Positions 1 to 43,138 of a DNA stretch of 64,000 nt are shown here, one piece after another (the stretch's first letter is position 1; each line of letters starts with the position of its first letter). The position numbers and the translations under genes were made by a program. Under the pieces are notes generated by a model. The model saw nothing but the letters and a program-made list of their open reading frames with translations. It was not told the DNA's origin and did not search any database. The DNA is from Neoechinorhynchus agilis (lineage: Eukaryota > Animalia > Acanthocephala): assembly GCA_051530055.1 (NCBI GenBank), contig CM121341.1:16780784-16844783 (forward strand), in the 5' to 3' direction.

Positions 1-728
1 ATTTGGTTGAAAATTTCCGTTATATATTTGTGCTGGCTGATACCACGGATTATAGTTCATGGCAAATGTATTAGGTGGGATATTATTATAAGTTTGAGAT
101 CTGAATTGTGGCAGCTGATTGTATCCATTGGGTGGATACAAATTTGGAGCTAATTGCTCCTGGGTACCATGGCTTTCGGTCGAAAACGGGTTGGGGAAGT
201 CTCCAGTTCTTGTCCGTGTAGGTCGCCGTCCTCTTCCCGGTCTACGTCCGTCACGCGCTCCATTCATATTTTCCTGTCCAACCCGAGGTCGCTTTGCTGG
301 ACGTTCCTTTATGTTGTTTGGATCGTACGTCCAATAGGATTCTCTGCAACCTGTGGCGCTTACCACCCTTACAAATTGATCATGGTGTGATAAATTGTGT
401 CTTATCGAGTTCTAAAATTGAGATATTATTGAAGTTTTAAAAAATGAATCATGGCGATGCTCACCTTCATTTGATCGATATCTCTTTTGACGGTCATTGA
501 TGCGAAATATTCAACATTACTAATCATCCAATTGTAGATTTCTTGTAGCGTTAGTCGCTGCTCTGCTGAGGTTGTAATCGCCAGCTGAATAAGTTCAGCA
601 TAAGTGGCGAATCCCCAAGGATTTTGTCGTCTCCCAGGTTTCCTTACAGTCTCAGTGGCCGCCTGTTCATGTGGATTTATTGTCGCTGAGGCATTCTCGT
701 AATTGTTTAATCGATTTAGATTGTTCAT
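1..728 (-). CDS. foxo: FoxO-type forkhead transcription factor, copy 1 (partial; exon 1 728-465, 53-nt intron, exon 2 from 411 running off the window start)
   Basis: Spliced translation RRQNPWGFATYAELIQLAI...LTLQEIYNWM...YF...QMK|NSIRHNLSHHDQFVRV...SYWTYNP. The GT-AG intron (AAG|GTGAGC ... TTTTAG|AAC) falls at the conserved FoxO xWK|NSIRHNL position. Nearly identical to 34622-35349 (offset 34621). Confidence 0.85.
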
Positions 729-1620
729 TGAAGTTGTTTGATCCTTGAAATTTGACGTTGTTACAAAGTTTAAGAATCAACGTGAATAGACGATCTTCAA
801 GTGTTAAGCGCAGCTTATATACTCCTGGATGTTTCTTGAAAACATTGACACCTAATCCAAGTGAAAAATATTGTATTTTTGAGTTCAAGTACACTTATAA
901 TTCGTAGTTAGAATTTTGAAACAGTTCGCCTCAGAATAAGCAGATAAATTTAAAATTACCAGACATTAATTAGTACTCACCGAAGATCGGCGTTTTTTAG
1001 CAATTAATAAATACACACGTTGATCCTCATCAGATTTAAACACTTACACGTCTGAATGTTCTGAAGGACGGGTTGTTCCTCATCGTTTGTGAGTTTATTT
1101 GGTATAAAATTCAATAAATGAGCTGTTCGAAAGTTAAAAAGCTGTTTACTTTAAAATGGGCCTTTTTTTGATCATAGATCAAAACATTTTTGCCTCTGTC
1201 AAATTGATGATCTCGTCAATAAACACTTTGCCTTGAAAGTTGTGATGAAATCAGAAGGAAACTATAATGCTACTTTATATGGGTTTTGGCTACAATCAGT
1301 AGTCTTCAAGAAAACCAAACAATCTGCTAATCATTTTTTTAATTTTTGTTGGCGACCAGCTTAACCGCTTTAAATCAAAAATTAAGCAATTTGAAAATCA
1401 CCAACATGGAACACGGTTTGTTGCTGGAATTTCACTTTGATTAACATACTTAAATTGCACTGTTCTGAAATACTTAGAAACGCCTCTGGTTTGAACGAAG
1501 CTTTTAAACACCCAGGAATGTATAAAACTGTATTTCAATTTCACATATTTCACTTTATTAATTTATAAAGTTTACTTCCAGGTAGACATTTAAAAAATAA
1601 AGTACTATCGCACTATATTT
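729..1620 (-). repeat. Shared FoxO upstream module (duplicated non-coding segment)
   Basis: Direct near-identical copy of ~35350-36250; inverted copies at ~29260-29998, 40310-40518 and 42760-43138. Confidence 0.9.
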
Positions 1621-3080: not shown

Positions 3081-4960
3081 GACCTTTCAATTTGTAAAGC
3101 GTTGGATATTTTCACCAGCAATATTGTAATATTTCCAATCTTTTGTACTAAAAACTTCGTGAACATACTATTTACTTTTTGTAGGAAAATCTTTTCATAT
3201 CAATGATTTTTTAAAGACGACCGGATCCTTTTGTGATCCTCGATCTTTAATTCACTTTGCGGATGGCTAATAAATAAGGATGCAACGATGGTTGAAACCT
3301 AATTTTATAGCGGCAGGACATCGAATGCGAATTATAATGTGAATCGGATTATTTGTCAGATGTCCATATTTATTTTTGTAAGTAAAATACTGTAATACGC
3401 AATTCAAAAAACAGATTTTTCGAGCACTTGTGTATCTAAATGAAATATTCTTGTTTCTGCATAAGCGATCTTGTTGTTTTACTAGAAATACTATAAAACC
3501 AAAATGATTGGCAGAAAATGATTAACCCTTTTTATTATCTCGAAAACGCGTACACGTTGTAAACTAAGCAGAGCTGTCGTTGAAATTTTTTTACTTAATC
3601 TCAATTAAGTTAATCTTTGACAGAACGATTTATTTTAACGATTTTTAAGTTAAGCTCGCTTTGCTTCATAGTGAAAATTCAAAAGGACTTGCATTGGGCT
3701 GTAAAAGGTAAGTAGGGCACTGGAGGTTTTCCGTTGTGAGTTGAGGTAGGACTCACTTTTCAAAGAACATCAAAAGAGCATCGATTTTCGCTAACGATCT
3801 CGCACTGCGGAAAAGAGCTTTTTAACTTTCGGTTTGATTTCGAAACAATTTACAGTAAGTTTCGGCCACAGGCCAAAGCCCAATGACGAGTACAGTGTCC
3901 ATTTGGACGCTCCCGAGGGCATACGAAAAATAAAGAAAATTTATATGTAAATCGATTGAGATTTATGAAAATCATTGTTTTAATTCCCAAGATCAGGACG
4001 TAAACTTGGATTGAAAATGGATGTGTTATCCCGGACAATCAAATTCCAAAAGGAAATGGGTACGAATCTGTAAAAGCTAATTTTCGCATTAATGCAAAAG
4101 GTTTTGTAACCTTAGCTTTTCATTTCCAAAGGACGCAATACAATATAAAACTCGCAAAATTAAATAGAGCAAAACTTTATATTCCTTGCATTACTGAACA
4201 AAAGCATTTATTTTTACCTGCTGAAACGATTACATTAACGCTTTATTTTACTTGGATTTTTACAAACCCTTTAGGTCTCGAAATTTTTATGCAAACGTTT
4301 TATTGTTTCTAAAGAATACGTTATCGCTTCAATTGGAAAACACAATCGGGGCAATGCGGCCAGCATTTTGGCCAGCGCCGCTGAATGGGAGCGTTGATCA
4401 TCTGAATTGGAAGTATAAAAGTTCATGAGCCGTTCAATCTTCAAACGCGAAAAGAAAGATATGTTGTTTGTTTATGGCTTAAACAAAAACTAAAAGGCCA
4501 ACAACCAATTACAGCCATTAATAAATAAGCTGTGCAAATTATGCGCCCATTTTGTGGAGGTGTTTCTTGATCTGATATATTTTAGCGGTTTCCCAATTTT
4601 TCGGAGTTAGATAGTTGAAAAAATAGTTCTTAATGACATAATTTATGGTTGGCTTTTCGATACTTTCTTTTTTAATACGATAAATATACTCTTATTTGAG
4701 TTGAGGCAGTTTTGGAATGAAACTATTAATTTCACTTTTTGGTAACTGGGAGGTGCGATGCTCATTATATTCTACCTTTTTATCCGAGGCAACAAAACCA
4801 TCGTTAGTATTTATCCAATTTTTGTTAGGAATAGATGTTCCTTCATTATGAACAACCATATTTGGAACTTTTCCATTTGCAAATAAACCGTGGGAAGATA
4901 ACAACCCATCTTTATTATAACCAACAACGTTTGTGTGGGGGCCGGTTTAGAACGATCACC

Positions 4961-6885: not shown

Positions 6886-7029
6886 AATTCTTTCATCCAT
6901 CCAGAGCATCGTTTTGCTTACTAGAGATTTCTTTTTATCCGTCACATTCAAGATATCGATATGTGAGGAGTTTACGCGATTTAATGATTTGAATTATTGT
7001 CTAGAAGTCTTCACACGGTAAATAACTCT

Positions 7030-7078
7030 TTTTAAGAACGTTTCGAACTTCTTGGGGTTCATCATCAGTTCTAAAATA
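7030..7078 (-). ncRNA. Minimal type I hammerhead ribozyme motif at a PLE 3-prime end
   Basis: Minus strand TTTTAGAA-CTGATGA-T-GAAC-CCCAAGAA-GTTC-GAAA-CG-T-T-CTTAAAAG: intact core, paired stem II, self-complementary ACGT stem III, ~70 nt downstream of the GIY-YIG stop at 7144. Stem I pairing is imperfect. Confidence 0.7.
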
Positions 7079-7143
7079 CAAGTTGTTAAATGGTTATTCC
7101 ACTCTCAAACGGACTTATTTTTGATTTTGTAGTTTCCTTTTTG

Positions 7144-7790
7144 TTAGCTTTGAAGACAGAGTTTGTAGCCTCGTTGGTCATTCAGGTCCGGTTTCTGTTC
7201 TTTGATTAAGAAAACTTCCTTAATAAAGCGTCAAAAGTTATTTCGTTCACTGTCTAAAACCATTATTTGGTTGTAATTGGCAACGAAGTGGCCAGTTTGC
7301 ACCTCGTTCAACGCGATAACGCCCTGAACCGCTCATTTTCTGCCAATTTCGTCTTAAAATTCCGACCTGTTTGTCCGATTTAATTGCTGTTGCATTTTTT
7401 TCTACAAGAAAATTTGTAGGCAACAACCCTCTTTTTTTACCTCTTGGTATTTCCTGGAAATGAGGTTTCGTATCAGTAGTGAAGGCCGAAAATAAAATGG
7501 GCATTTTTTCGGCAGATCGCTGTTCTTAATTATCCTCTAGATTTTGCAACGCCAACAGTTGGTTCGTGGTTCGCTGTCCGGAACTCTAATGCGTAGGTCC
7601 ATTCGATTCCGTCCCAGGGTGTTCCTCGCACGGTCCACTTGCTCTCGCGCTGAAGTAAGAATATCTTTTGGGTACTCAACTAGCTGAAAATTCGCTTTGG
7701 CTGTTGGATTTCATATGTGACGCACTCCTCGCTGCAGATATTGTAGGCACGATACAGAAAACCTTGGAAGGTCGTCGCTAATAATTCTTA
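7144..7790 (-). mobile_element. Degenerate Penelope-like element (RT thumb plus GIY-YIG endonuclease)
   Basis: Frameshifted minus-strand translation: GFLYRAYNICSEE...EYPKDIL...AYKFSCRKKCNSN*IGQTGRNFKTKLAE...VLDSERNNF*RFIKEVFLIKEQKPDLNDQRG. Confidence 0.8.
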
Positions 7791-7829
7791 TAGACATCAG
7801 TCCTTAATTTCACATGACTACTTGAGAAG

Positions 7830-8825
7830 ATGTCGTTATTGGTTTTTCGACGATTTCAGTCCGTCCGTTTCTCGTCATCCGTAGCTCCGATTTATAAATG
7901 GAACAAGCCGGGTTCTCCGGGACTCTCCTACTTTGTTCAAAAATCAGGAGGACGTGGATGCTTACCGAAAGTACCGCTTGCACCATCTCGAAATCTTGGT
8001 AAAGCTCTAAATGACTTCGGAAACCTGAGCACTGTTTGCGAGGAGGCCAAATGTCCAAACCGTGCTGAATGCTGGTCTCATGGAACAGCTACAATCATGA
8101 TAATGGGCGATGTATGTACCCGAGCGTGCCGGTTTTGTTCAGTCAAGACCAAAGCTCGTCCACCTCCTCTCGATTCTAACGAACCTCAAAAAGTAGCCGA
8201 AGCCGTGGCTAATTCCAATCTATTTGGCAAGCGAGCACTTCGGTACATTGTCATTACGACTGTCACAAGAGACGATCTTGTGGATCACGGATGTGATCAT
8301 TTCGTTCAATGTGTTAAGGAACTTAAAAAGCGGTGTCCAAACGTGAAAGTGGAATGCCTAACATCGGATTTTGGGGGAAATTTGGATTTGGTGAGGAAGA
8401 TGGCCATTGAAAGTGGTCTTGATGTTTATTCTCATAATGTGGAGACTGTTAGGGAGTTGCAGAGATTGATGAGGGATCGCCGTGCTTCGTTTGATCAATC
8501 ACTAAATGTTCTTAGGACGGCTAAAGAAGCTAAGTCTGATCTACTTACAAAATCGAGCCTTATGCTCGGAGTGGGAGAGACCGATGAGCAAGTAAAGAAC
8601 ACCCTTGTTGCTCTTAGAGGCATTGGAGTGGATAGCATCACATTTGGTCAATACCTTCAACCGACCAAAAATCATCTTAAGGTCAAAGAGTTCATAAGTG
8701 ATGAGAAATTCGAATACTGGAAACTGGAGGCTGAGAAGCTTGGCTTTGTCGGTGTTGCGAGCGGAAAGTTGGTAAGATCGTCTTATAGAGCTGATAAGAT
8801 CCTAGAAGCTGTGAACTTTTCTTAG
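7830..8825 (+). CDS. LIAS: Lipoyl synthase, mitochondrial (radical SAM), intronless
   Basis: [13 protein letters not shown] (CX4CX5C), CTRACRFC (CX3CX2C), [23 protein letters not shown] and C-terminal RSSY motifs. Confidence 0.97.
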
Positions 8826-9222
8826 ATTGAAGGCGAACATTAACGCCGAGATTTTTAATTGAGATTGGTGGCAAAAATTTCTGCTATCAGTTTTCTTAGG
8901 GGATTTCAATGGGGCAGAGATATCATAAATGGGTACCACGTTTTATCTGCCCCAAAGCGAGAATCGGGTATCTTTCGCTCAAAGAATGTACAAAAACATT
9001 GGAAGATTGCGGTAAAAACTAGTCTGTACGCAATGTAAACGCTCGATTCAATGCTTAGCAAATTTAAAATAAGGATCATCTGCGCCTTAAACGGATTTTT
9101 ATCTTACTTGTGGATCGTTAAAAAATGAACAAGAATTTGTGTTTCCTCAAGCGCTATTACTGTTTAAAAACTCATTAACTCAATATCATTGAATAATCTC
9201 CTTTCCTCTTAGTTCTTTAGAT

Positions 9223-11170
9223 ATGTCAATGCTCCTTGTGTTTGGTCCAATATACGCAATATACGTCGCTGTGCTATTCGGACTGCATTTTCGAATCAAC
9301 AATCAAATTTCGGATCCGTACATGGATGAGATATTTCATGTGCCTCAAGCTCAAGCGTACTGCGTTGGAAATTATAGCCACGTAAGAGAATTCCAGTTTA
9401 CGATTGCTCATTAAAGCACACAGTGGGACGGCAACATCACGACTCCGAGCGGTCTTTACTTTTATTCGTCAGCAATTGCATTTATCGAAAAAAGAGTTTT
9501 CAAAGTATGCGATTTAGGATGTAGTTCTTTACGATTCCACAATGTTTTTATTGGAACGATGATTCCTTTGATCATTATCAAAATTATAAAGGTATGTTAC
9601 GAACTTGTAAATCTGCTTAAGTTTATTTAAGGCCGATCATCTATTGGATTTCGTAGATTCTCTAAACATTGCCTTACACCCACCCATGTTTTTCTTTTAT
9701 TTTCTTTACTATACTGATTCACTGTCGATCGCGTTCTCTCTTCTGTCACTGCTGTTCGCGCTTCGTCGACGTCCTTGGGTTTCTGCACTTCTGATTGGAT
9801 ATGCAAGTCTCCAAGTAAGACAAACAAACATTGTATTTGTTCCTCTGATCGGATGGATCACCTTGAGGGAATGTATTCAAGTGAACAGAGAGTTCGCTAG
9901 GTTACCGCTCGGGGTACTGAGTGAAATTTTGGATTGTTTAGAATTTTAGAGCCATCAAAAGGAAAACACTAAACATTTATCTGCCTTCTTTATGGAAACC
10001 TGAGGTCTACTAATATTCTATAATTCATTGGCTACTCACAGAACGGTCGAAACACCTTATAGAAATTGTGATCTTTGATAAAAAAAATGTTTTCAATTGA
10101 ATGTGCTTTAATCGCTCAGTGCCCCGCGTTTACGGACTATGATGCGAAATCCTTCTTTGAGCCTCGATTATCTCAAAAGTCTGTTCACGGTTATGCCAGT
10201 GTTCAGAATATTACAAATACTCAATCCGTTCGCTATTGTAGTCGTCTCTTTTGCTGTTCATTTATGGATGATCGGCAAAGTTGTTCATGGCCACGCGGAG
10301 TATCACAAGCCACGTCTTCATTTGATGCAATTCTTTTACTTCTGTTGCTATTATTCAGCTTTCGAGTTGCCTGATATCATCTCTGGTATCAAGGACTTAA
10401 GCCCAAAACTTATGTTTTATTGCACTTTAGCTGGACCGATCATCATCAGACAGATTATGCAAAGGTTCATTTAAGAGTTTCAATTTTGGATACTGAGATT
10501 TGTTTTACTAGCACTATCAATTTATAAAATTCGTCCACGAAACATCAAATGATTTTAACAGATTGTTTATTTTTCAACGCTAACAAGTATTCGAAGCTTG
10601 ATAGTAGGCACGAAAACTTAACTTAACCCAAACACTGGTTATCACTCAAATAATGATTCTTTTTCCTCGCTGAAGATTTTTGTATACCAAATTTCATGTC
10701 TTCGATTTCCCTTAATGAACCTCGGCAATCAGTATCATTTTTCATTCGAGCATCCATTTCTATTGGCAGATAATCGCCATTACACGTTTTATATTTGGAG
10801 AAGAATTTTAAAACCAGAAAAATGGGCTGTACTTCCGATTTTATACACTGTATCCACAATAAGTTTCTTGAAAAGATTGTTGACGATACATCACAGTGCA
10901 GATCTTGGCTTATTTGTGACTGTTATTGGCCTTCTAATATCGGTGATTGTCGCAATCTGCTTTCATCCCTTATTCGAATTAAGATATTTTATCCACCCGT
11001 TTATTTTTTGCACGTTGCTCATACGAATCAACCGCTCACAAAAACGTTCAATGGCCAAGAGTATTATTCATCTCTTAATGAGTATTGGAACAAATGGCTT
11101 AATCATTTGGATATTCTTATACAAGACTTTCATTTATGCTGATGGAAGCATTGCAAGATTTATGTATTAA
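9223..11170 (+). CDS. ALG10: Alpha-1,2-glucosyltransferase ALG10/DIE2, about 5 exons
   Basis: PYMDEIFHVPQAQAYC, WDGNITTPSGLY, LYYTD, RQTNIV, HPFLLADNRHYTFYIW, ELRYF and terminal RFMY motifs. Introns 9382-9423 (42 nt) and 9592-9631 (40 nt) are clear; the later two are approximate. Confidence 0.92.
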
Positions 11171-11559
11171 ATTGGTTTGATTTTGCGACCAAAACAAAAA
11201 GGCCGTTGAATCGTTGTTTAAGTTTTGCCAATCATTAATAAGTTAGTGAAATCTACAAGGCCTTTATACTAAAGAGTACATTGAGCAATCATTCATTTGC
11301 TACATTAGTTTTATTTCGCTTAGAATCAATGCTTTCGAAATATCTTTATTTCGAACGTTATCCGAATTGGCCAATACGATTTCAACAATACTTTTTACGG
11401 ACAATGAACTGCTTAAAGAATAACTTTTAGATTTTTTAAAATGGTATCATCTAAACTAGCGATTTTTTTCACTTATTCGGGTACCAAGCGACTTAATTAA
11501 GATTTTGTTCGTCGCTCGCAGCCAGCAACATAAAATTCGCCTCCGTTGAACCGGAGGGG

Positions 11560-11850
11560 GAGCGGCAACCGCCGCTGAGGAACGCAAAAATACAAATGCA
11601 GGAACTTGGGTCGAAATCATTATTTTGTTCCCTTTGGCGTCGAGACGCTCGGGTCGTTTAGTACCACGGCGCAGGATCTGGTCAAGCAATTGTCCAAGCG
11701 ATTGAGACGAATCACTGGCGATCCGAGATCAGGAGCATTTCTCCTACAAAACATTAGTCTGGCTGTGCAACGGGGGGAACGCTGCAACCGCCCTTTCGAC
11801 CATTACACCACGACGGCAGCTGAGTGATCCAGAGCGGTGGCATGAATGTT
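11560..11850 (+). mobile_element. CRE-clade element, 3-prime end fragment
   Basis: FVPFGVETLGSF...RRITGDPRSGAFLLQNISLAVQRG, the RLE C-terminal motif. Confidence 0.85.
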
Positions 11851-12387
11851 TGTAAATACTTTTTTGTCCTTGTGAAGTTAGTCAAATCCTCTGCACTTTA
11901 TTCAGATCGACCATGAAATCATTACTTAATTTTCAACATTCTGACCTCATTTTTCAATTCATGAGACATTCTCCATTTCTTTTGTTCGTGTGTGAGTTGC
12001 GGGGCTATATGATCAAAAGAACACTTCTGCCCATTTCTTTTCCTTGACGCATTTAGATTCCTTCTACATTTCTAGACATTTCTAACAAAGGGCATTCGTT
12101 CTTAGCCTTCGCTGTTTACCAGTAATCCTTTTCTCAAACGCCTCCGATTGAAGCGAAAGTGAAGCGATTGATAAAAGAGCGGAGCCAGATGAACCAGAAA
12201 CGAGATATGCTCCGCTATTTCCAAATTGGTCGGCAAATAAGCAAAATAACTCAATATGTCAACGATGAACTCGAAAAGCAAGATGAAAATAAAATTACAG
12301 CGATTTCGAATCTTGTGCTTAAATTCCTGATTGTAGTTTGGCTTTTTCCCGATTTGACGAAATTTATTAAATTATTCAAAGTAAAAG

Positions 12388-12430
12388 GGTCAATATTTCG
12401 ACTCGCTCGTGAGTCTTCTTCAGGATGTCT
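12388..12430 (-). ncRNA. Minimal type I hammerhead ribozyme motif at a PLE 3-prime end
   Basis: Minus strand AGACATC-CTGAAGA-A-GACTC-ACGAGC-GAGTC-GAAA-TA-T-T-GACCC, immediately downstream of the GIY-YIG ORF ending at 12451. Confidence 0.75.
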
Positions 12431-12450
12431 AAAAAGAGTAGGAAAGTTTT

Positions 12451-14303
12451 TCATGTGATTGGAGTACTCATTTTGAGTACATAGTCCGCCTTATTGCCTT
12501 CCATTGTATCATATTGTTCAATAAAAATCGACTCAGCGATAACACGAACGTATCGAATGTCGCTACGGAATAAAACATTGTCAAAGTTGATTGTGTGTAC
12601 CGTTGCATCAACATGATTGACTATCGCTGAGTTCGCATCATTTCTCCTCAGTGCATACCTATGTTCATAGATTCTGCGGCAGAGACTGTTAGTTTGTCCT
12701 ATATAGGATCTGGCACAATATCCACACGGTATGCAATAAACCACACCAGTTGGTGGGTCAGCTCTTGCAGAACCTATGACAGCATTGAGGGATTTTCCTT
12801 TTGTCGTGTATGCCACTGCCTTAATGTTTTTCCCTTATATTTTTTGACAATCTGACTATTCAGACTGTCATTCTAGGTATCACTAATAAATGGGATATTT
12901 ATGTATCGCATTTCTTCGGGCTTTTGACCAACCCTCCTTTTCCATTGACTCAGGCTCTGCATGCAGCGTGAGATGTATTTATAGGGATAGCCTCTCTTCT
13001 TAAAAAGGATTTTTAAGTAATTTATTTCCAACTTCAAATACTCATCCTCCGAGCAATATTTAAACGCCCTTCTAAATAGTGCCGTCATTCTACTTATTTT
13101 GTACTTACTGGGCTGTGCTGATGTCCAAGGTACTGGTTGATTTGGAATGTGAGGTTTCCGAGAAACCTTTGTTCTGAAATATTCATAGCGTTCAACCAGA
13201 ACATCTAAGAATGGGAGGACATGATCTTTTTCCTTGTCAGCACTCCATTGGATTGATGAGTCTTTACTGTTTAGAATGTTACACAGAAAATCTACAGATA
13301 CTGTACTGTCTACCAGGAGAAATGTGTCGTCCACATAGCGAAGCCACAATTTTATGAATGGGAAATCAGGCACGTTGATACTCTCCTAATGACGCAGGTA
13401 GATCTCAGCCAAGACTGGAGCAATCGGACTACCCATTGATACACCATTCACCTGATCAAAATGACTGTCTTCAAATTGAAAATTATTTTGCCCAGTACAG
13501 AATTCCAAAAGCCTTTTCCGGTCTTATCTGGAAAGATTCCAGAATTTATCATTATTCATAGGCAATGGGATAGCCAAATCAATGGCCTTTTTTACTGGAA
13601 TCTTAGTGAATAGAGAGGCTACATCGGCTGAGATCATTTGGTGATCTATTAATTCAGTATGGACCCTAAGGGGCTCAATAAGTTCATGACCAGACGTAAC
13701 CACCTTATCACTGTATGGCATAAGTTCTTTCAAGATATTCGCTATACACCGCGACACCGAAGTCGCATAGGTTGAGTGTGCAGCTATTATAGGTCTTATA
13801 ATTTGACGGGATCTTTGTGTACCTTGGCTAGAAAGTACATTTTGGCGTATGAGCATCAACTGATCTGTGGGCTTTATAAAGAGTTTCACTTATTTTATCT
13901 CGTTTTTTGAGAGAAAGGAGGAACGCGTTAAAGGTATTTTCCCGTTTTTTGTTGGACAATTTGTCAACCTCTTAAATTCTGGTCCTAGAAGTATTTCATT
14001 TGTAAGGGATTTATAATGATTTTCGTTAAGGACACAAAATCCATGACCTCTATCTGTTTTTAGTATTTTTATACCTTTGATATTTTTAAGTAATTCTATC
14101 CCATGCCGCATTCTGGTTGGCATATTCGAGTTGCACTGAAATCGTGAGTTATAATACGACTTTTCAACCCTCCATTTTTCGAGCGATATCGCCGCAATTT
14201 TGTTGATTGCAATCCAACAACCATCGGTGGCATCTCTACCGGCAAGCATTTCCATATTTCTCAACGACTCAAACATTTCGATGGTTGAATGGATGATCAT
14301 CAC
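12451..14303 (-). mobile_element. Penelope-like retroelement, near full length but disrupted (RT plus GIY-YIG)
   Basis: RPIIAA, SADVASLFTKIP, GVSMGSPIAPVLA, WLRYVDDTF and LPFLDVLV RT motifs, then GVVYCIPCGYC..SYIGQT...EH...ES GIY-YIG; split by stops and frameshifts. Confidence 0.93.
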
Positions 14304-14454
14304 GGACCGATGGCTATCCGATTACTTACTAAACATTTTCGATCTCATACGTCGTCTGAACTAAGCAAAATAAAAGTTTAAACGGGTTTTTCAATTATAT
14401 TCTATTTAATGATGTATAATGTTGAAGAGGTTAATGGATGTTTCGTTTAATCAT

Positions 14455-15035
14455 TTACACCACCGCTCTGGATCACTCAGCTGCCGTATTGGTGTAACGG
14501 TCGAAAGGACGAATGCAGCGTTCCCCCATTGCACACCGGCTCGAGTCGAGCGGAAAACCCGGCCGTTGAGGCGACTTCCTTAATTATGCGGTTGACTGCT
14601 GAGTGCTGTGCGTGGCGAGTATTTGAACGCTTGCAGTCAAGGCCGTGAGTTCCCGACCTATTCACTGTCCCACCGCACCGGCATGTATATGAGCCTGAAA
14701 AATCGATGCCCAACCGAAGTCCCACAGCGACGGTGATGGCTTGGTCATCCAGCCTCGTGCCAACAACCGTGATCGGGAAAGCCTTCAAGAAGTCGCTGGA
14801 GTGTGGAGCCGAGACTGCCAGGAGACGAGCTCTTTCGGTGGGAGATGAGCATGAGTTAAGAAGCTGCTGATAATACGCAGTGTGGAGCAAGGCAGTCCAA
14901 CGTTTTTGGGAGTTTGTTTCCGTTGGAACTACCAGTCCGAACACTGACGTCCATTGAGCGTGCGCTTCAATCAGTCCAGCTGGTGGATACGACTCAAATC
15001 GAGTCTGTGGTGGGATGATTCTCAGCACCATGTCT
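14455..15035 (-). mobile_element. CRE-clade element fragment, internally deleted
   Basis: RARLLAVSAPHS...AVGLRLG...CRCG...GTHGLDC (CCHC) joined to a 3-prime end matching 11765-11850. Confidence 0.88.
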
Positions 15036-15752
15036 GAAGAGGCCGAAGTCGAAGGAGACTGTATTATTGTTCTTCATTTTGCCCATTTTAATTTATGGCT
15101 TTCAAGGACGCCGAAATTACAAAGACTAAATTATTAAAATCTTAATCCATTGAAATGGAGTTAATTTTTTAGGCACCTTTTCTTCCCTAAGCGTTCTTTG
15201 TGAAATGTTTTTAATGGGAAAGCTTTCGCCTTATTTTCTTTTAATGTGAGGGATGGTGGCGGATGCGAATCTCCTGTTTATTCCTTCGCTGAACCGCATA
15301 AAAACACAGCAACCAAAATAATATTTGTAAGGTTTGCAAGATTTCTTTGAAGATTAGAAAAAATTGCGCTAAAAATGAAATTGCGAATTTAGAAATTATC
15401 CAAAGCTTAGTTCTTAGTTTACTTTAATTACTTCGAAAATAAGTCTGAAACAGTTTAAAATAAATTTCGCTTTTTTGAGATCTTGCTTTTTACGTATTTA
15501 AAATTGCAGAAAAATTCTGAACCGGTCATTTTATGTTAGGACCGAAACTTTTCTTGTTTACAGAATTGATTTATTATAGTGCCGATCAAACATGGAAATG
15601 TTGGTCTCAAATCTTTAATGACGTTTTTCCAAACATTTAACTGGTTTAAATTGAAAAGGAATCCTAAAAACCGATAAATATTTGCAAAGATTGCCTTAGC
15701 AACGAGAAAAATCGAATGCTTACCAATTCGAGGTTTACAGAGAATCGACTGC

Positions 15753-16748
15753 ATGGGTCCGTTTTCGCTGACATTCACAATCGTCAAAAAGAGTTCATTT
15801 TACGATCGCCCATCAATGGAAAGGGACCGTACGGTCATTAGCGATCTGAAACCAAGTTTATGCACAGATTTCATCAATAAAGACGAAATCGACGACCACG
15901 TAATTCTTGAACATTCGTCTTCGTCGCCTTCTTCATCGCGGTCTTCTGATTCGATTTCCCAAATAATAGACAGCGTAATTGCTTTACCGTTTGTTAGTCA
16001 AGAGAAAGATTTGACAAAGAAAACCGATAAGATTAATTTGATTGACGTTGAACAATTTATTGAACGAAGCACTCAGACTTTGGATCTCGAAAGTTCAGTT
16101 GCTTTCACCAATGAACTCATGAAGATAAGCGTTGAAAATGTAGACAGTGAGTCCTCTGAAAAAGTACAACCAGCTCAGTTGACTTCAGAACATTTATCGA
16201 AACTCAATCTTTCTGAAGAATGTATAAAGAGTATGGCAACGTACAAACCGATCCAGGATTTATCTAATAAAGGTCAGATCGATCCTTCAGTTGAATCAAC
16301 GAACAAAGGAGGACAAATTTATCGTATTCACAATCTTGATTTGGCGAGCGCAGCAAAAGAACATCCAAAACCAACAAAACTCTCTAAGCCAACAAGAAAA
16401 TCTCCGTATGTAAAAAGATTGTACAGTTCTCTTGATAAACAATCGTCGTCAATGATGCTTCGAAGTCCAAAATACAGACGATTGATGGAAAGGAGCCTGT
16501 TGGATCAACACTTGACCGATATTCCGGGAGTTGGCCGCTCGACGATTAAACGACTGAATGATAAAGGAATTTTAACACCAAACGACTTTTTGAAGATCTA
16601 TCAGGATATTGAGAGGGGAGGTGGCTGTGCCAAAACTTTCGCCGCTTATTTGCAGAAGGAGTTTCGTTTCCAAGAAAGATTTGCACTTGAGAGCGCTGCA
16701 GCCATAAGGGATAATTTCTGCAAGTTTCTTATTAAGGATTTAAGTTAA
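15753..16748 (+). CDS. 331-aa intronless protein with a C-terminal barrier-to-autointegration factor (BAF)-like domain (~16460-16745)
   Basis: C-terminus SPKYRRLMERSLLDQHLTDIPGVGRSTIKRLNDKG...F..YL...AIRDNFCKFL aligns by eye with BAF SQKHRDFVAEPMGEKPV..LAGIG...KKLEERG...F.EWL...LREWCDAFL. The N-terminal ~235 aa is Ser/acidic/Lys low complexity. Confidence 0.75.
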   Translation: MGPFSLTFTIVKKSSFYDRPSMERDRTVISDLKPSLCTDFINKDEIDDHVILEHSSSSPSSSRSSDSISQIIDSVIALPFVSQEKDLTKKTDKINLIDVEQFIERSTQTLDLESSVAFTNELMKISVENVDSESSEKVQPAQLTSEHLSKLNLSEECIKSMATYKPIQDLSNKGQIDPSVESTNKGGQIYRIHNLDLASAAKEHPKPTKLSKPTRKSPYVKRLYSSLDKQSSSMMLRSPKYRRLMERSLLDQHLTDIPGVGRSTIKRLNDKGILTPNDFLKIYQDIERGGGCAKTFAAYLQKEFRFQERFALESAAAIRDNFCKFLIKDLS

Positions 16749-18389
16749 ATGTTTTTGAATAAAATAGGATCTATTTTCCTGGTTGACAAGAGGCTTGCCA
16801 TTATGATTTGGGTCGAAACCATTTAAATAAAGTGTATTCTGGAGAGTAAAATTGTCGATTGGTCAACTGTTTTTCGTTAGATATTTGATTAATATCCTTC
16901 CCTCCAGCTTTACGATATAAGATGTTCAAATTAGATATCCAACAGACTATTAAATTTATTATTTGAACAATATTATTAACCTAACGATATTGCGTAAAGG
17001 AAAAGGGACTTCAGTAATGATTTAAGCAAATGAATTTCAGTGTGAGTTGTCTGAAACACGAACTTGGTCTCTAGTCATTTGATTTGAGAATACATTATCC
17101 GGTAACTGCGGAAGGTTTTCGTCTATACTTTGATCAAGTGCTCCAAATTAGTTTCTTCACCAGAATATCCTGAATTCCATACCTTTTCAGCGTTCAATTC
17201 AGTTAAATAAACCGGCCGATTTTCAGAATGAGTAACATTAAGAAATAACATTTTGTTACGTTGTCAGCTGATTTTTTCCCGCATATATTTCTTTTTATTG
17301 ATGTGAATTGTTTCAGCACTTTCCGCGGCCGGGGAAATGTTGTTTTACATCAGAGAAGTGATATAACCACTTAAACTCTGATGAACCGTGAAGAGTTCTC
17401 GTAAGAAAGTTTAAATTTAATAAGATATGTTCAAAGGGGAACTTTTCGTTAAATTTTGAGCTTTTTAGAAATTAATAGTTTTTAATTCAGCCGCGGAACA
17501 TCTCACAAGTTGAAAAAACGCGCGACTTAGTTGTTCAATTTATTTGTTTTATTCCATTTGTCTATTGAGATTATAAATCTAGGTTCTATATTATCGGATA
17601 AGTTACTTTAAACAAAAACTATTTCGTTTGAAGTATCAAACACCGTTTAATGATCTTCGAAGATTACCACTGAAGCCTTTTAAAAAGATTGACGCCGATA
17701 ACGATTTTTTCAATCGACAAAAATTAAACGAACTAGTCTCTATAGGTGATTGTCGTGAGCTTCCCATATTGTTAGCTGAGCAAAACCATTTTAAATAGAA
17801 TATTTTCAAATAGCGATTATTTGTGTTACACAATTCAATTCGCATTCTACCTTGGATTAATGCATGCGAGTATTTTTGTACATTTAGCCGTGATACCAGA
17901 AACATTTGGAACTCTTGGGCAATCTCCGGCCTAATTTTTATGGTTCAACACGAAGATTACGCGAATAATTTGGCAAATTGTCTCTGTTGCGTAAAGTTTA
18001 AGACAACGCTTATAAAAGCTTAGGTCTTAGTTCACCGAATAGAATCCTACTTTTGCATAATTATAGATTTCTAGGTACAGGAAAAAAGGATGATTAAGCA
18101 ACCTTTTTTCGATTAAATGTATCCAAAACTCTAAGGGTTATTGCAATCACGGGTACTGAGCATTTCTTAAGCGATTTTAATCACTGTAAACACGGATAAA
18201 TCATTGGGTTTTCGCAGACGAATAAAATCCCTATTTTCTTGCTTACATGACTGTATGATACAAATCCCATTAAAAATGGTTAATATATGAAGAGAAAAAT
18301 GTTCAAAGAAAGCGGTGTCCTTTTAAAATTATAGCTTTATAATTTTTGTTCAATTAAAAAACAATAGAACGTTTATTTGTTAGTTCTGA

Positions 18390-18609: not shown

Positions 18610-19011
18610 TCAAATAGTGTTATGAACGATTAGTCGAAAGAAATCGTTGACGACGTACCACCGACCATCAGGTGTACATTTAAGTAGAAAAGATTGAGCG
18701 AAATCCAGGGGCAGATCATTATCCGCTTTCAGCCTTCCTGTGACCATTATGAAAATACCCGACTCGAGAGTACTGCTGATATCGCAACTGGTGATGCTAT
18801 GACTGACCGTTTTGAACGTAAACGTTTTGATTTTATTAAGAATGGCGTCTTGACCCCGACAAATCGTGCCTTCAAATGAAAGCTGAGACGATTCATTATC
18901 AGGAACGTAGAGTTGCAAAAGATTCTCTCTGTTTGGACCGTCGAATATTGAATAGTAACTCTGAACAAAGCTTTTTCCGAGATTGTTGATTTCTTCGTCC
19001 CTCGAAGTCAT
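18610..19011 (-). CDS. NUTF2: Nuclear transport factor 2, intronless
   Basis: LGKSFVQSYYSIFD..RENL..LY...S.LSFEG...G...I..K...VTGRLKAD.D.PL.F.Q.F.L...NDFFRL. Confidence 0.95.
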   Translation of the reverse strand: MTSRDEEINNLGKSFVQSYYSIFDGPNRENLLQLYVPDNESSQLSFEGTICRGQDAILNKIKTFTFKTVSHSITSCDISSTLESGIFIMVTGRLKADNDLPLDFAQSFLLKCTPDGRWYVVNDFFRLIVHNTI

Positions 19012-19529
19012 CCGAGATTATACTAGCAGCAGTTTTGAGTTTGCACGTGAAATCGTGTATATGTCGTCGCACAGCAGCAGCCAGGAAACGAAAGAAGCGA
19101 CTAAGCGCGAAGAAACGACGACTCGGATTTGAAATCGCAAGGGCGTTCAAGTTTCCTTACTCAATGAAAAATTGTAAACAATAATCTTAAGACGTTCGAA
19201 TACCTTCTAAACAAGTGTTGATGCGTAAATAGAGGTACCGGGTTAAATGATTAGAATTATTGTCTGGAAGATGAACTCGACGACGTAAATTCTTTACCGA
19301 ATGAAGACTTCTGAATAACACTTCTTAGAAAAAGCATCGGTCGTGACGAAATCACGAATCTTTTCTATGCAGAGTAGAACGGCATATGATCGAAAAATTA
19401 TTATTCTGAACTTTCGAATATTTAAAATAATTATAACAATTTTTTAAAGATTGAATTATTCATGTTTTCGTATAGGGAAAAATGAAGTAATTTATTAGGT
19501 CCGATATTTCGGAGACATAATCTCATGTT

Positions 19530-20609: not shown

Positions 20610-21596
20610 ATGTCAAAATCAAAATTAACTCAATTTCTTCAAGACCAACAAATCAATCGATCATTCTTCGATTGGTTTCCAGGTCACATGCGCGAAGCAA
20701 TGAGGAACATGCGTTCCCTTTTAGCTGGAATCGATTGTGTCATTGAACTACATGACGCTCGAATACCTCTGACTGGTCGCAATCCAAACCTGAGCAAGGA
20801 ACTCAACCATCGAGAGTGCTCACATTTATTACTTTTGAACAAATGTGATCTCGCACCTCAGAGAAAAATGAAATCGAATATTATAATGACTAGTCTTAAA
20901 CAGAATCCAAAAAAGAATTACATGCGCATCCGAGATTGGATCGTCCAGAATGTTGTACCTCGTCGATCCGCAGATATTTGGAACGGCATAAATGTGTTAG
21001 TTGTAGGAATTCCAAACGTTGGTAAATCTACACTTTTGAATATTTTACGAGAGCAGGCAATAAGGACTGGAAATATGGACCATGAGTCTCTGAAGAAACG
21101 GAGACAAGTTTGTGCTGTTGGGTTCCAGCCAGGAGTTACGCGTTCAGTAATGAATCGTATTAGGATTTCTACGAATCCTCTAATATACGCCATTGATACT
21201 CCTGGAATTTTACCTCCGTCTTCGAGTGAGACTAACGATGTAGATTGGCTCAGAGCTTCGTGTATATCCTGAACCGGTGAGTATCTCTTTCTTTAGGGCT
21301 GATGGAGAAACTCAGCGCAAAAACTGGTGCTTACTAATACAAGTCGCCCTCAAGGTCGCATAGCTCATGATATAACCACGGAGTTTTTGTTTCATTACAT
21401 GAGTGAATATGGATACACCGAGTTGTTTAATCAGAGATATGGAGTGAAGAAATCTATTCAAATGTTTCATGAGTTCATGTTGGTGATCGCAGGTAATGTT
21501 GACCAAATGGCGAATGCTGAACGAAGGTTTCTTAATGATGCTCAGACAGGTGCGATTGGGAGAATTTGTTTTGATGACGACATAATTCAAAACTAA
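20610..21596 (+). CDS. MTG1: Mitochondrial ribosome-associated GTPase 1 (RbgA/YlqF family), two exons
   Basis: WFPGHM, DARIPLTGRNP, NKCD (G4), GIPNVGKS (G1), PGVTR (G2), DTPG (G3); second exon 21316-21596. Exact donor is uncertain. Confidence 0.9.
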
Positions 21597-24838: not shown

Positions 24839-27092
24839 ATGCAAGCATCATTCGACTCCATTTCTCACATGCATCGTCTCGTGCTCGACGGAGGCCTCAA
24901 TCCGGCTGAATTACCCGATCGATACCAGCAACTATGTTTAGAAGTCGAACGTTCATGTAAAGAAAGCCCGGACACAATTCTGGTCAACGAGACCAATGAT
25001 CGATTTGACCAAGAACGTCTCACTTGGCTTCTTGTAGAAGCAATGGGATCTTCATTTTGGACAAGATCGAATGTTTCCCCTTTGGATATCGATCTCGCTA
25101 ACGTTCTCGTTCTCATTTTTGAAAAAGAAGCAAAACCTAGGGCCTCTTTATTGGCTCAAAAATTTCAATACCTTACAATGCAAATATGTGATTGGCCTTA
25201 CACTCGTAGACAAGTTCAACGATCTCGGGAACAGAATACTAATGAAACAAACTTGTGGGTTCATCCGGATTGCGAATGTTTAATGATAGAAGACAAGGTA
25301 GTGGATGCGAGGTTATTCGAGCTCGCATTTGCATTTATACGCTCTGGTCAACGTGAAAAAGCTTTGAGTTTGTTTGAAGACGTTGCCCAGATTTGGCGTT
25401 TTGCGATCTTGGCTGGAGCCGTAGCGTCAGGAAATGATTCCTCAAGAGTTGGTGATATGTTCAGGTTAAGTGTAAGAATTCTTCAAAAGGCTCCAACTTC
25501 ATACACGAGTCCGCATGAAAGCGCCTGTATGCATGTTCTCTGTGAAAGTGGTGATCCGATCTGGAGAATGTGTCCTATGGAATGTATATGGGATTATTGG
25601 TGGGCTGGTTGTGTCCAATATTTGGCTGCTTGCAAGAATCGATCAAGGAATAGCAGTGTACCGGTTGCTCTAAATGAAATATTCGATCACGTCAAAAAGG
25701 AAAGCGAAGTGAATTTGCATAAATGGTCCTTGATCGAAAGAGTTCAAGAACTGATTTGCCTTAAAATGCAAAGTCTCATCTAATAAGCCAACCCAAGAAA
25801 CTAAATGACGTTTTCTTACGGCACGTGTCGGTCCTGATTTTGTTTTTATAAACCGTGTAGTTTTTACAGGTCTAGTTCAATTTTTTGAAGCCCCGTCTTT
25901 ATACTTCATCCCACAAGCAAATCTTGAGACTTTTGCTATAATGCCATTTCGGACTGTTTTACACTCTTGTCCAGTTACATCGCCGAAACCATTAGACCAA
26001 ACCACGAATACACGGATGCAGAACTTCATACGAGTAGATTCTTTATTCATTTAATGATCGTCCTTGACCTCTTACTCCCCGATTCTCTTGGCACAAGATG
26101 GACGGAATACGACGCATCCCTATCTGCGTACATTAAACTGCTTTTGAACCAAGCTTTGTTAAGCACTTCTTTTAACACCGAATCGACTAATCGATACTTT
26201 GATTCAATCGCAACTTACGTATCGTTCTCTAAGAGCAAAGAACACGGCATTCAAATGGTGATAAGTCAGGCATGCACTTTATTCGGGGGGGGGATTTCGT
26301 GCATGTCCCGACAAAGATGCCTTCACTACTTTACCAAACTCGTGTCTTGTTCCATTCTCAAGATCAATCCGTAATCGATGTGAGATCGCAGAGGCTGCTT
26401 TAGCCACTTATACAGACCTTCTAAAATCTCGTGTCATTTACGAGGTCATTGAGAAACCGGAAATAGGTATTCCAAACGATGTATCCGAGCGATTGATTTT
26501 GAACCTGAATATACTTGAAGGAATCGCAAATGAAATCGTCCTTTTGGACTACTCAAATGCGATTGTTCGTATGTGTTTATTAGCTAATCTACGACCCCCA
26601 TCGGAGGACGCAACTGTTGTTCTAAAGTTTCAACGACATATCACTCTGAAAGCTAATTTAAGCGAGTACGCTGAGTGTCTCCGAACTGAAAGGACCGTCG
26701 TGAAGGAGCTTCTTAACATGAGCAGGATGGTTCAGATGGTTGAACATGATGAACGTCACGTTAACATGATTGTTGGTGAGGTTTCTAAGGTCATTGCGGG
26801 TTTAGTGAGTGAGTACAAAGTGGCTGAATTCGATGATCCTAAACGAAAAACTCAGGTGGAGTTAATGAAACGACTCTTATTGAGAATGCTTATGCAGTCC
26901 TTGATAGATCTTCTTGAAAAAGAGTTCCCGATGGAATTGGTGAAGTTGGTGCTGGATGAAGTGTTCGTCAATGATCGCTTATCGGATGCAATCGATCAAA
27001 ATACGGCCGTACTCCTTTTAGATAGCGTTTCAAGGGCATCCGCTTTGCTTATGCAGAGAAAACACTGTCCTCTTATGAACACTTTGACATGA
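24839..27092 (+). CDS. NUP107: Nucleoporin Nup107/Nup84 family, multi-exon, divergent
   Basis: QERLTWLLV, HPD...D...L...F..IRSG...A.....QIWR.AILAG, RFFIHL and AYIKLL patterns across three consecutive same-strand ORFs (24839-25783, 25967-26374, 26493-27092). Start and exon borders are uncertain. Confidence 0.8.
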
Positions 27093-32734: not shown

Positions 32735-33230
32735 GTGGATTTGACGATGAGAAGAACAGTGAAATATCTTGGCAGCGAAGTAAATAGGACAAATTACCTC
32801 GAACCCGAAATAACTGCTCCTATACAAAGCGAGTAGCTCAACTGGAGGAAGATGTCTAGTGTATTATGCGACAAAAGGATCTTACCGAAACTGAAAGGCG
32901 GCTGTTCGAGACGGTGGTGCGACCAGCCATGTCATATGGCGCCGAAATTTGGACGAGCGAGCAAAGCGACCTCAGAAGATTAGAAACGAACGAGATGAGG
33001 AGGGAGCTGTTCGGCACTTGCCGCTGTTCAGAGTTGATCGTCCAAAGAAGGTTATGCCGGCACGATAAAGTTTCGAAGTGCGAAGCATATCACATACTGC
33101 GCAGCACGGAGAGACTGGAAATCGCTGACGAGGAAGGACGAGGAAACGATGGGTGGGTTGCATTAAACAGGATAAATGGCTTGTCGATGGAACCACAACT
33201 TCTCGAAAGAGAGAAAAAATACGTGAGTGA
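32735..33230 (+). mobile_element. RTE-clade LINE fragment (post-RT C-terminus)
   Basis: KYLGSEV...W.KMSSVLCDK.I...LFETVVRPAMSYGAEIW...LETNEMR. Confidence 0.8.
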
Positions 33231-33369
33231 AAAAGAGAAGAACGTGATCAATTTTGATAACACGGCGTTAACAGTTCGAATACACCGATGGATTTATGTT
33301 TGCCAATAATCAACGTGAAAGTTAATTAGTTGTACACAATCGTAGGAACCAGCAGGCTTCATTGTCAAT

Positions 33370-35349: not shown

Positions 35350-36250
35350 TGAAGTTGTTTGATCCTTGAAATTTGACGTTGTTACAAAGTTTAAGAATCA
35401 ACGTGAATAGACGATCTTCAAGTGTTAAGCGCAGCTTATATACTCCTGGATGTTTCTTGAAAACATTGACACCTAATCCAAGTGAAAAATATTGTATTTT
35501 TGAGTTCAAGTACACTTATAATTCGTAGTTAGAATTTTGAAACAGTTCGCCTCAGAATAAGCAGATAAATTTAAAATTACCAGACATTAATTGGTACTCA
35601 CCGAAGATCGGCGTTTTTTAGCAATTAATAAATACACACGTTGATCCTCATCAGATTTAAACACTTACACGTCTGAATGTTCTGAAGGACGGGTTGTTCC
35701 TCATCGTTTGTGAGTTTATTTGGTATAAAATTCAATAAATGAGCTGTTCGAAAGTTAAAAAGCTGTTTACTTTAAAATGGGCCTTTTTTTGATCACAGAT
35801 CAAAACATTTTTGCCTCTGTCAAATTGATGATCTCGTCAATAAACACTCTGCCTTGAAAGTTGTGATGAAATCAGAAGGAAACTATAATGCTACTTTATA
35901 TGGGTTTTGGCTACAATCAGTAGTCTTCAAGAAAACCAAACAATCTGCTAATCATTTTTTTAATTTTTGTTGGCGACCAGCTTAACCGCTTTAAATCAAA
36001 AATTAAGCAATTTGAAAATCACCAACATGGAACACGGTTTGTTGCTGGAATTTCACTTTGATTAACATACTTAAATTGCACTGTTCTGAAATACTTAGAA
36101 ACGCCTCTGGTTTGAATAAAGCTTTTGGATACCTAGGAATGTATAAAACTATTTTTCAATTTCACATATTTCGCTTTATTAACTTATAAAGTTCACTTCC
36201 AGATAGACATTTGAAACATAAAGCATTATCGCATCAATTCGAAAAATCTT
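35350..36250 (-). repeat. FoxO upstream module, copy 3
   Basis: Direct near-identity to 729-1620. Confidence 0.9.
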
Positions 36251-42300: not shown

Positions 42301-43138
42301 ACCTAAGAATCATCACTGGTGCAAAGGACTAAGCGCGAAAATGCGAAGAGCTATTTCCATGGTGGCGTACAGTTCTTTTAGAGACAATCGTTGAGCAATC
42401 CCGTAAATGCTTTGGCGACCTGATATCGTGCGCCATTTGGGATCCGTTTCAGGACGTTCTTGGGCAGAAACCGCACGATATTAGGTAGCCAAATAGAGTC
42501 AGTGGTGATCTGAGAGGTCTTAGGCATAATCAGATCGGTTGATTGTAGTGATAACAAGACCCGCTACAGCGGAGATCCCGGGGACCATGGGCAAACAAAC
42601 CCCCAAATGGGTTAATTTAGAAGAACTTGGGAGCCCGGCAGCGTTGGTCTTCTCAGGTTGAGCGTGATCTTTAAGTTGCGCAATAAAGGTTTTTTTGCGT
42701 CAGTGATTTGAGGAACATAATTTAGGCGTGGTGTCCCGGTAGCGTTAGGCGTTTCCATTTTATGCCAAATAACCTCACAAACGATGAGGAACAACCCGTC
42801 CTTCAGAACGTTCAGGCGTGTAAGTGTTTAAATCTGATGAGGATCAACGTGTGTATTTATTAATTGCTAAAAAACGCTGATCTTCGGTGAGTACTAATCA
42901 GTGTCTGGTAATTTTAAATTTATCTGCGTATTCTGAGGCGAACTGCTGCAAAATTCTAACCACGAGTTATAAGTGTATTTGAACTCAAAAATACAATATT
43001 TTTCACTTGGATTAGGTGTCAATGGTTTCATGAAACATCCAGGAGTATATAAGCTGCGCTTAACACTTGAAGATCGTCTATTCACGTTGATTCTTAAACT
43101 TTGTAACAACGTCAAATTTCAAGAATCAAACAACTTCA

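Follow-up and report, generated by a model that had tools for sequence, protein, structure and literature searches.

Can the domain of barrier-to-autointegration factor (BAF) be carried at the end of a much longer protein, and what would it still do there? To our knowledge, characterized BAFs are always tiny, stand-alone and extremely conserved dimers, and the roles of BAF in nuclear reassembly, envelope repair and defense against foreign DNA rely on a link between DNA binding and the binding of LEM-domain proteins and lamin. The question is raised by a 64,000-nucleotide stretch of the acanthocephalan Neoechinorhynchus agilis, hereafter the window (CM121341.1 of assembly GCA_051530055.1, about 16.781–16.845 Mb), in which a plus-strand open reading frame (ORF) at about 16.7965 Mb specifies a 331-residue product whose deposited label is only "hypothetical protein." A first-pass annotation had described this ORF as a BAF-like domain fused to a long low-complexity N-terminal extension, possibly a retrocopy. 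The BAF-type domain and the disordered extension are borne out, the retrocopy is not, and the whole is best explained, with a probability of roughly 65%, as a divergent BAF homologue with a disordered N-terminus and with DNA binding uncoupled from the nuclear envelope.

The ORF has exactly the position, strand and length first given for it (Table 1), and by the criteria of coding sequence it is a genuine protein-coding gene of N. agilis. Every one of 20,000 shuffles made from the 702-nucleotide N-terminal part contained an in-frame stop, which argues that the 331-codon frame is not a product of chance, and the other five frames of this part contain 7 to 22 stops. A protein homology search of 5.8 billion proteins returned one match, the 331-residue N. 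agilis protein ACOME3_003991, which is 98% identical and is encoded by a sister copy nearby. The deposited model of the window copy is 336 residues long and could be reconstructed as a 5-nucleotide exon (15155–15159), a 583-bp intron (15160–15742) and the entire ORF, an arrangement that adds the residues MEIDC ahead of M1. This mini-exon is doubtful and is likely an artefact of the gene predictor; the annotation of the sister copy lacks it and has one exon only. With or without it, the ORF is contained whole in the deposited model, where all 331 codons are treated as coding, and the statement that the gene has no introns holds for the ORF itself. Transcript data for N. agilis are deposited under PRJNA1223661 (PMC12690905).

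The C-terminal domain follows BAF from end to end. In an alignment to human BANF1 (identical to PDB 1CI4 chain A), BAF residues 1–55 pair without gaps with the window protein at an offset of 234 and residues 56–89 at an offset of 237, the sole gap being a 3-residue insertion, G290-G291-C292. M235 pairs exactly with BAF Met1, and the landmarks on which the BAF assignment had been based are colinear: S238-P-K-Y-R242 with S4-Q-K-H-R8, I257-P-G-V-G261 with L23-A-G-I-G27, and F325-L326 with the terminal F88-L89, past which five further residues, IKDLS, extend. Identity to human BAF is 15 of 89 residues (17%). The Pfam family SAM_BAF (PF02961) matches at 17.0 bits with the full protein and at 20.7 bits with residues 235–331, spanning profile positions 3–82 of 88, that is, nearly end to end, though under the gathering cutoff of 25 bits. 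Two helix-hairpin-helix (HhH) families, HHH_5 (PF14520; 23.6 bits, cutoff 27) and IMS_HHH (PF11798; 21.7 bits, cutoff 24.4), are likewise sub-threshold and span only about 22–30 residues. When a profile of the window domain and its one relative (see below) was compared by hhalign with 12 canonical BAFs, the probability was 83.9% with an E-value of 7.7e-6, and the alignment began at BAF residue 1. A custom hidden Markov model of 12 mostly vertebrate BAFs produced partial and weak alignments and told less than hhalign and the curated Pfam model.

Structure prediction points in the same direction. AlphaFold2, run on a two-sequence alignment, models the core with a predicted local distance difference test score (pLDDT) of 83–89; a full-length run agrees, and the domain has values of 77–89 over the two runs. 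Residues ~237–328 are predicted to adopt the complete BAF fold, from the N-terminal helix through the HhH, helix 3 and the pseudo-HhH to the long C-terminal helix. When this model was compared by Foldseek with the PDB, ranks 1–8 were all human BAF (7Z21, 6GHD, 1CI4, 7ABM, 2EZX), with a template modeling (TM) score of 0.74 normalized to the query and 0.84–0.86 normalized to the target and with the root-mean-square deviation at 1.8–1.9 Å over 88 aligned columns, which make up the entire BAF chain. The next matches, the N-terminal domains of RadA and RAD51C, reach a target-normalized TM score of at most 0.54, and a control search of a viral structure library found nothing BAF-like or comparable. 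Since the BAF profile covers positions 3–82 of 88 and HHH_5 only 30 residues, and the TM scores differ as given, no other HhH family describes the domain better; the rival HhH families lose on both coverage and fold, and the C-terminus is a BAF-type domain rather than a generic HhH module, as first proposed.

Membership in the family is supported through a relative. When the domain was used in an exhaustive phmmer search of 1.84 billion representative proteins, the only true relative was P0002 (39% identity, E 3.2e-9; in a pairwise comparison, 39% over 96 residues with E 5e-17), which is encoded on a 1,464-bp contig of run ERR13848439 and has 353 residues as called, or 336 from the first ATG. 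The match lies at its extreme C-terminus, giving it the same architecture as the window protein. P0002 passes the SAM_BAF cutoff, with 27.9 bits at full length and 31.6 bits for the domain, and its next family scores no more than 19.7; its HhH families (HHH_5, IMS_HHH) reach at most 15 bits, all at least 12 bits under BAF. The remaining eleven phmmer matches are multi-HhH repeat proteins that align in the hairpin only (E 6e-7 to 3e-4), LTDIPGVGRSTIKRLNDKGI being the segment that the domain and these proteins have in common. The window domain thus leads to P0002, and P0002 to a score above the Pfam cutoff, and by fold and by this transitive homology the window protein can be placed in the BAF superfamily, as a divergent member, despite its own sub-threshold score. 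A scan of metagenome contigs with the domain profile found no relatives, and no paper found in a literature search reports a long extension joined to a BAF domain; the arrangement of a disordered extension and a BAF fold was thus found in one other database protein, P0002, and in no published account located. Because the architecture is common to a relative only 39% identical, the fusion is old.

What such a domain might do can be read from the residues that serve BAF. Residues 6, 25, 27 and 46 of BAF are essential for DNA binding and residues 51, 53 and 54 for binding emerin, the mutant 53E keeping DNA binding and losing emerin, and residues 46 and 47 sit buried in the dimer's interface (Segura-Totten et al. 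2002; PMC2173821). In structure 2BZF, DNA is contacted by S4, Q5, K6, G25, G27, V29, L30, A71 and R75 (10.1101/2023.05.21.541616). In 6GHD, emerin is contacted by F39, Q48, V51, L52, L58, E61 and W62, and the immunoglobulin fold of lamin A/C by V11, A12, P14, E83, A87 and F88, with G47 at the center of the dimer interface (Samson et al. 2018; PMC6212729). When these positions are mapped (BAF residue followed by window protein/P0002), the DNA core is conserved: S4 is S/S, K6 is K/K, G25 is G/G, G27 is G/G, K33 is R/R and L46 is L/F, the essential residues corresponding in the window protein to K240, G259, G261 and L280 and in P0002 to K265, G284, G286 and F305. Near the hairpin, E28, reported to disfavor DNA binding, is arginine in both proteins, a change toward DNA binding, and the domain has an isoelectric point (pI) of 9.6 and a net charge of +6 in both, compared with a pI of 5.8 in human BAF. 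Because K6, G25, G27 and L46 are conserved, E28 has been replaced by arginine and the domain is basic, it would be expected to bind double-stranded DNA non-specifically, as BAF does, through the HhH hairpin and the N-terminal Ser-x-Lys; the hairpin LTDIPGVGRSTIKRLNDKGI is the predicted DNA-backbone-binding element.

The positions that bind BAF's partners have changed. Among those used by LEM-domain proteins, V51 is D285/S310, K53 is E287/E312, K54 is R288/Y313, Q48 is I/K and L58 is T/Y, with conservative changes at F39 (I), L52 (I) and W62 (Y). Among those used by lamin, A12 is E246/K271, P14 is S248/K273 and A87 is K/K, and only E83 (as D) and F88 (as F) are kept. As K53 is glutamate in both proteins, V51 is D/S, A12 is E/K and P14 is S/K, LEM-domain proteins and lamin would probably not be docked. 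At the dimer center, G47 is K281 in the window protein and A306 in P0002, and the position of L46 remains hydrophobic; a lysine at the center of the interface argues against a BAF-type dimer, so the dimer on which DNA bridging is based may not form. Two signatures are found in this family only, a loop I-E-x-x-G-G and a helix E-S-A-x-A-I-R-D-N-x-x-K-F. By its architecture and conservation, by its LEM and lamin positions and, as far as G47 suggests, by its dimer core, the window protein is not a canonical BAF. It is probably a lineage-restricted BAF homologue that binds DNA without the nuclear-envelope partners of BAF, and it might act as a nuclear DNA- or chromatin-binding module uncoupled from the envelope.

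A fast-evolved BAF orthologue, lengthened by the extension and still performing core nuclear assembly in a gene-losing parasite lineage, is the alternative that comes closest to this account, and we regard it as rather unlikely. It would fit the reduced gene repertoire of N. agilis (PMC12690905; PMC12256650) and the results of the searches for a canonical BAF: tblastn found none in the window or in two retrieved loci, L001 and L003 (described below), a search that was not genome-wide; no entry from Acanthocephala or Rotifera occurs among the matches listed (120 of 941 BAF homologues); and the supplements of two N. agilis papers contain no mention that was found, which again is not a genome-wide test. 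That these searches were not genome-wide lessens what they can say for orthology. Canonical BAF is also strongly constrained, the twelve aligned sequences, from sharks to snail, being 73–90% identical to each other, and a fall to 17%, with the LEM, lamin and dimer-core residues lost as well, is more in keeping with a paralogue that has taken on a new role.

The extension, described at first as rich in Ser, Asp and Glu, then in Lys and Pro, with SP sites, has that composition by residue count: residues 1–190 are 17% Ser and 16% Asp plus Glu, residues 191–234 are 23% Lys plus Arg and 9% Pro, and Ser/Thr-Pro sites lie at positions 58, 217, 238 and 275 of the 331-residue protein. The term low complexity suits only short stretches such as SSSSPSSSRSSDS; for the region as a whole, predicted disordered fits better, as pLDDT in the full-length AlphaFold model is below 50 at every residue from 1 to 236 and a folded module begins at about residue 237. 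Residues 1–236 are thus predicted to be disordered, and a Pfam scan found no family matching the extension of either the window protein or P0002. The extension of P0002 cannot be aligned to that of the window protein, yet its acidic part is alike (pI 4.8, net charge −13), and the charge layout, in which an acidic Ser-rich region is followed by a basic linker and a basic domain, is common to both. A layout kept while the sequence diverged is what would be expected of a functional disordered region. The basic linker of P0002 holds PKKRKLE, which resembles a classical monopartite nuclear localization signal, and the linker at residues 191–234 is a possible nuclear-localization region, so that nuclear targeting is suggested by sequence. 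One might speculate that the acidic, phosphorylatable disordered region modulates the basic domain intramolecularly or recruits basic chromatin proteins. The sole hint of a motif common to the extensions is SEECIKSMATYKPI (residues 154–167, nucleotides 16212–16253) with SEESSLHLYSPL in P0002, which follow the pattern S-E-E ... S-[ML]-x-x-Y-x-P-[IL]; the BLAST E-value is above 10, so this likeness is without statistical support and may be due to chance.

The sister ORF (ACOME3_003991) is intact and lies ~59 kb away, on the other strand, at about 16.7366 Mb. The two copies belong to an inverted duplication that spans 10 kb or more: window positions 7029–17248 are colinear with positions 2–11496 of L001, the retrieved locus of the sister copy, at 91–98% identity and with several kilobase indels. 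The arms occupy ~16.787–16.798 Mb and ~16.736–16.748 Mb of CM121341.1 and may extend further inward than the retrieved loci. The N. agilis assembly was made from pooled worms (PMC12690905), and an uncollapsed haplotig has therefore to be considered. Genes have decayed reciprocally between the arms, which favors a true segmental duplication over a haplotig. In the window arm, a lipoyl-synthase-like radical-SAM ORF (7830–8825, plus strand; 331 residues; Radical_SAM 74.8 bits) is intact; its copy at L001 803–1694 is spread over three frames, has a ~20-residue deletion and a Cys-to-Tyr change in CPNRAECW, is annotated as a 154-residue gene, and by these features is a probable pseudogene. Conversely, the window arm lacks, between 14398 and 15055, the GCD14/TRM61-like and tRNA isopentenyltransferase (IPPT)-like genes that L001 carries at 3448–4760 and 7804–9243, directly upstream of the sister copy, and has retroelement fragments in their place; the IPPT-like gene is divergent from the sister BAF-like ORF, ~750 bp apart. 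Of the genes in the arms, only the BAF-like gene has stayed intact in both.

The ORF copies differ at 13 nucleotides, of which 8 are nonsynonymous and 5 synonymous (ratio of nonsynonymous to synonymous differences per site, pN/pS, 0.43). Divergence is 12/702 (1.7%) in the N-terminal part, 17/1006 (1.7%) in the non-coding flanks and 1/291 in the domain; the single change in the last 97 codons is L330I, outside the predicted fold. These numbers bear on a second alternative, in which translation starts at M234 or M235 and yields only a stand-alone BAF-like product of ~97 residues, and the 234 upstream codons are a leader or an artefact of choosing the longest ORF. Such a product would account for the exact alignment of M235 with the canonical BAF initiator methionine, for an N-terminal divergence that equals that of the non-coding flanks while the domain has a single change, and for an extension that holds no recognizable domain and cannot be aligned to P0002. 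Weighed against it are the 234-codon open frame, absent in all 20,000 shuffles and set among other frames with 7–22 stops, and P0002, which has the same long frame but no methionine at the position of BAF Met1 (NYHSKKY), its next methionine lying inside helix 1. The acidic-then-basic layout is found in both extensions, and pN/pS in the extension is 0.38, although this value is not significant. On balance a short product is distinctly unlikely.

Several observations weigh against reading the window protein as a divergent BAF homologue that binds DNA. Its own SAM_BAF score falls short of the cutoff (20.7 against 25 bits); phmmer searches of the PDB with the full protein and with the domain gave weak matches to Dbh/Pol IV, Pol beta and RadA, and no BAF; and the exhaustive phmmer search reached multi-HhH proteins and not canonical BAF. 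Single-sequence searching is too insensitive for this domain. The Foldseek E-values are modest (0.05–0.45), and the fold model was built from 2–3 sequences, a shallow alignment, with a mean pLDDT of 71.7. The functional mapping rests on an alignment of 17% identity, and within it secondary DNA contacts are lost (R75 is L/A, A71 is E/R and K72 is R/S), so that the domain might bind DNA less strongly or in another way. A test of selection between the copies, based on the 13 differences, found no significant contrast, the N-terminal part diverging as the flanks do, and the family comprises two known members. That the domain is a generic HhH module of the RuvA/RadA/Pol-X/Y type, resembling BAF through the HhH motif alone, is highly improbable, for although in the window protein HHH_5 and IMS_HHH score no lower than SAM_BAF and the phmmer searches return Dbh/Pol IV, Pol beta, RadA and eleven multi-HhH proteins with zero canonical BAFs, these matches span only ~25–50 residues, the BAF match runs the whole length and takes in both the N-terminal S-x-K-[HY] helix and the terminal F-L, with TM scores of 0.84–0.86 as against 0.54 at best for HhH domains, and P0002 exceeds the SAM_BAF threshold with HhH families at least 12 bits lower.

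Unlike the domain and the extension, the suggestion of a retrocopy is not supported. Downstream of the gene there is no run of seven or more A residues and no A-rich 20-mer within 850 nucleotides, and its flanks have no 11-mers in common that would mark target-site duplications. Neighboring genes are single-exon or contain one intron, so the intronlessness of the BAF-like ORF is uninformative, and an architecture common to P0002 at 39% identity would make any retroposition ancient. The retroelement-rich setting that had been remarked on is real: the window contains reverse-transcriptase, LINE-like and Penelope-like fragments and is rich in retroelement debris (Table 1), but nothing ties this debris functionally to the BAF-like gene, and a link to retroelement control has nothing behind it beyond the name of its relative, BAF. 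Of the two arms of the duplication, only the window arm carries the insertions at 12454–13385, 13527–14321 and 14480–15073, all on the minus strand. Frames resembling the C-terminal part of ORF2 of elements without long terminal repeats, and with no Pfam match, occur at 40881–41633 (minus), 46060–46824 (plus), 58944–59414 (plus) and 32860–33306 (plus).

Table 1. Features of the BAF-like gene, its surroundings and its neighbors (window coordinates; residues are those of the 331-residue product; LINE, long interspersed nuclear element; UTR, untranslated region)
Feature	Position	Strand	Details
Complete ORF	15753..16748	+	331 codons, ATG start, TAA stop; product 331 residues
Acidic Ser-rich predicted-disordered part, residues 1–190	15753..16322	+	pI 4.7, net charge −11, pLDDT 25–44
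Basic Lys/Pro/Ser-rich linker, residues 191–234	16323..16454	+	pI 10.3, net charge +7
BAF-fold domain, residues 235–328	16455..16736	+	Pfam SAM_BAF, hhalign, AlphaFold, Foldseek
Helix-hairpin-helix, residues 254–273, LTDIPGVGRSTIKRLNDKGI	16512..16571	+	Sub-threshold HHH_5/IMS_HHH; aligns with BAF 20–39 including G25, G27
Putative promoter/5′ UTR, ~700 bp common to both genomic copies	15055..15752	+	blastn, window against L001
AATAAA, likely polyadenylation signal, 10 nucleotides past stop	16758..16763	+	Kept in sister copy (L001 11006); putative function
Penelope-like fragment	12454–13385	−	YVDD motif, then weak GIY-YIG (16.8 bits)
Retroelement fragment	13527–14321	−	Window arm only
LINE-like ORF2 C-terminal fragment	14480–15073	−	CCHC-like motif; ~700 bp upstream of BAF-like ORF
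NTF2-like gene, convergent with BAF-like gene	18613–19017	−	Downstream neighbor
50S-ribosome-binding-type GTPase ORF	20610–21269	+	Downstream neighbor
ORF with weak Nup84/Nup107 match	24839–25780	+	23.2 bits
Reverse-transcriptase ORF	47073–47585	−	RVT_1 33.9 bits
Reverse-transcriptase ORF	62574–63842	−	RVT_1 110.8 bits

The presence of two nuclear-transport genes beside the BAF-like gene, one NTF2-like and one with a weak Nup84/Nup107 match, is probably a coincidence. Elsewhere in the window, near-identical Forkhead fragments (NSIRHNLSHHDQF..., FLNFVTTSNFK...) occur three times, at 1–776 (minus), 33373–35397 (minus) and 43091–43438 (plus), which points to further local duplications; in the annotation of L003, the second retrieved locus, a 641-residue Forkhead gene that overlaps the window start is recorded.

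The window protein would amount to a natural separation-of-function variant, carrying the substitutions by which mutagenesis separates the activities of BAF (K53E and changes at G47, V51 and A12) while keeping the DNA-contact residues, and it could reveal the activity of the BAF fold on its own as well as the diversification of a highly constrained family in a gene-reduced parasite lineage. A more far-reaching proposition, and a rather unlikely one, is that the two proteins stand for an unrecognized class of acanthocephalan (perhaps syndermatan) chromatin proteins, in which a probably monomeric BAF-fold DNA module, tethered to a long acidic, phosphorylatable disordered region and free of LEM and lamin binding, replaces a lost canonical BAF or works alongside it; roles might then include germline or embryonic chromatin compaction or the restraint of abundant retroelements, and this would be the first natural case of BAF DNA binding uncoupled from the nuclear envelope. 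The phylum is poorly studied. Practical value is modest, as the two known members are both uncharacterized.

Among known systems, generic HhH proteins (HHH_5, IMS_HHH, RadA/RAD51 and the thumb of Y-family polymerases) share the hairpin, and LTDIPGVGRSTIKRLNDKGI is nearer to the HhH consensus than is the motif of BAF itself; this similarity covers only ~30–50 residues, the TM score is at most 0.54, and none of these families reaches its Pfam cutoff. HMGB1 also pairs a basic DNA-binding domain with an acidic disordered region, its acidic tail. The likeness is one of functional analogy only, in that the window protein combines an acidic region of net charge −11 with a basic linker and domain of net charge +13 in one chain; there is no homology, and the acidic part of the window protein is N-terminal and much longer. 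Another parallel is BAF-L (BANF2), which is reported to heterodimerize with BAF and to bind DNA weakly and has 53% similarity to BAF (reviewed in PMC13443024). With BANF2, a diverged BAF paralogue of altered properties, there is a precedent for proteins of the BAF fold acting to modulate BAF and not to duplicate it. Unlike the window protein, it stands alone at ~90 residues, is vertebrate-restricted and has no disordered extension, and a specific kinship between the two is not expected. BANF1 itself remains the nearest model. The same predicted fold extends over 88–89 residues, the sequences are colinear all the way from Met1 to the closing Phe-Leu, and the positions kept are Ser4 and Lys6, G25, G27, K33 (as R), L46, F59, W62 (as Y), L63, L81 (as I), R82, E83 (as D) and F88. 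The two differ in identity (17%), in pI (5.8 for BANF1, 9.6 for the window domain) and in the loss of R75 from the latter. BANF1 also stands alone at ~90 residues, and BAF lengths among the matches listed (120 of 941) are 79–155 residues, whereas the window domain forms the end of a 331-residue protein behind a 236-residue extension.

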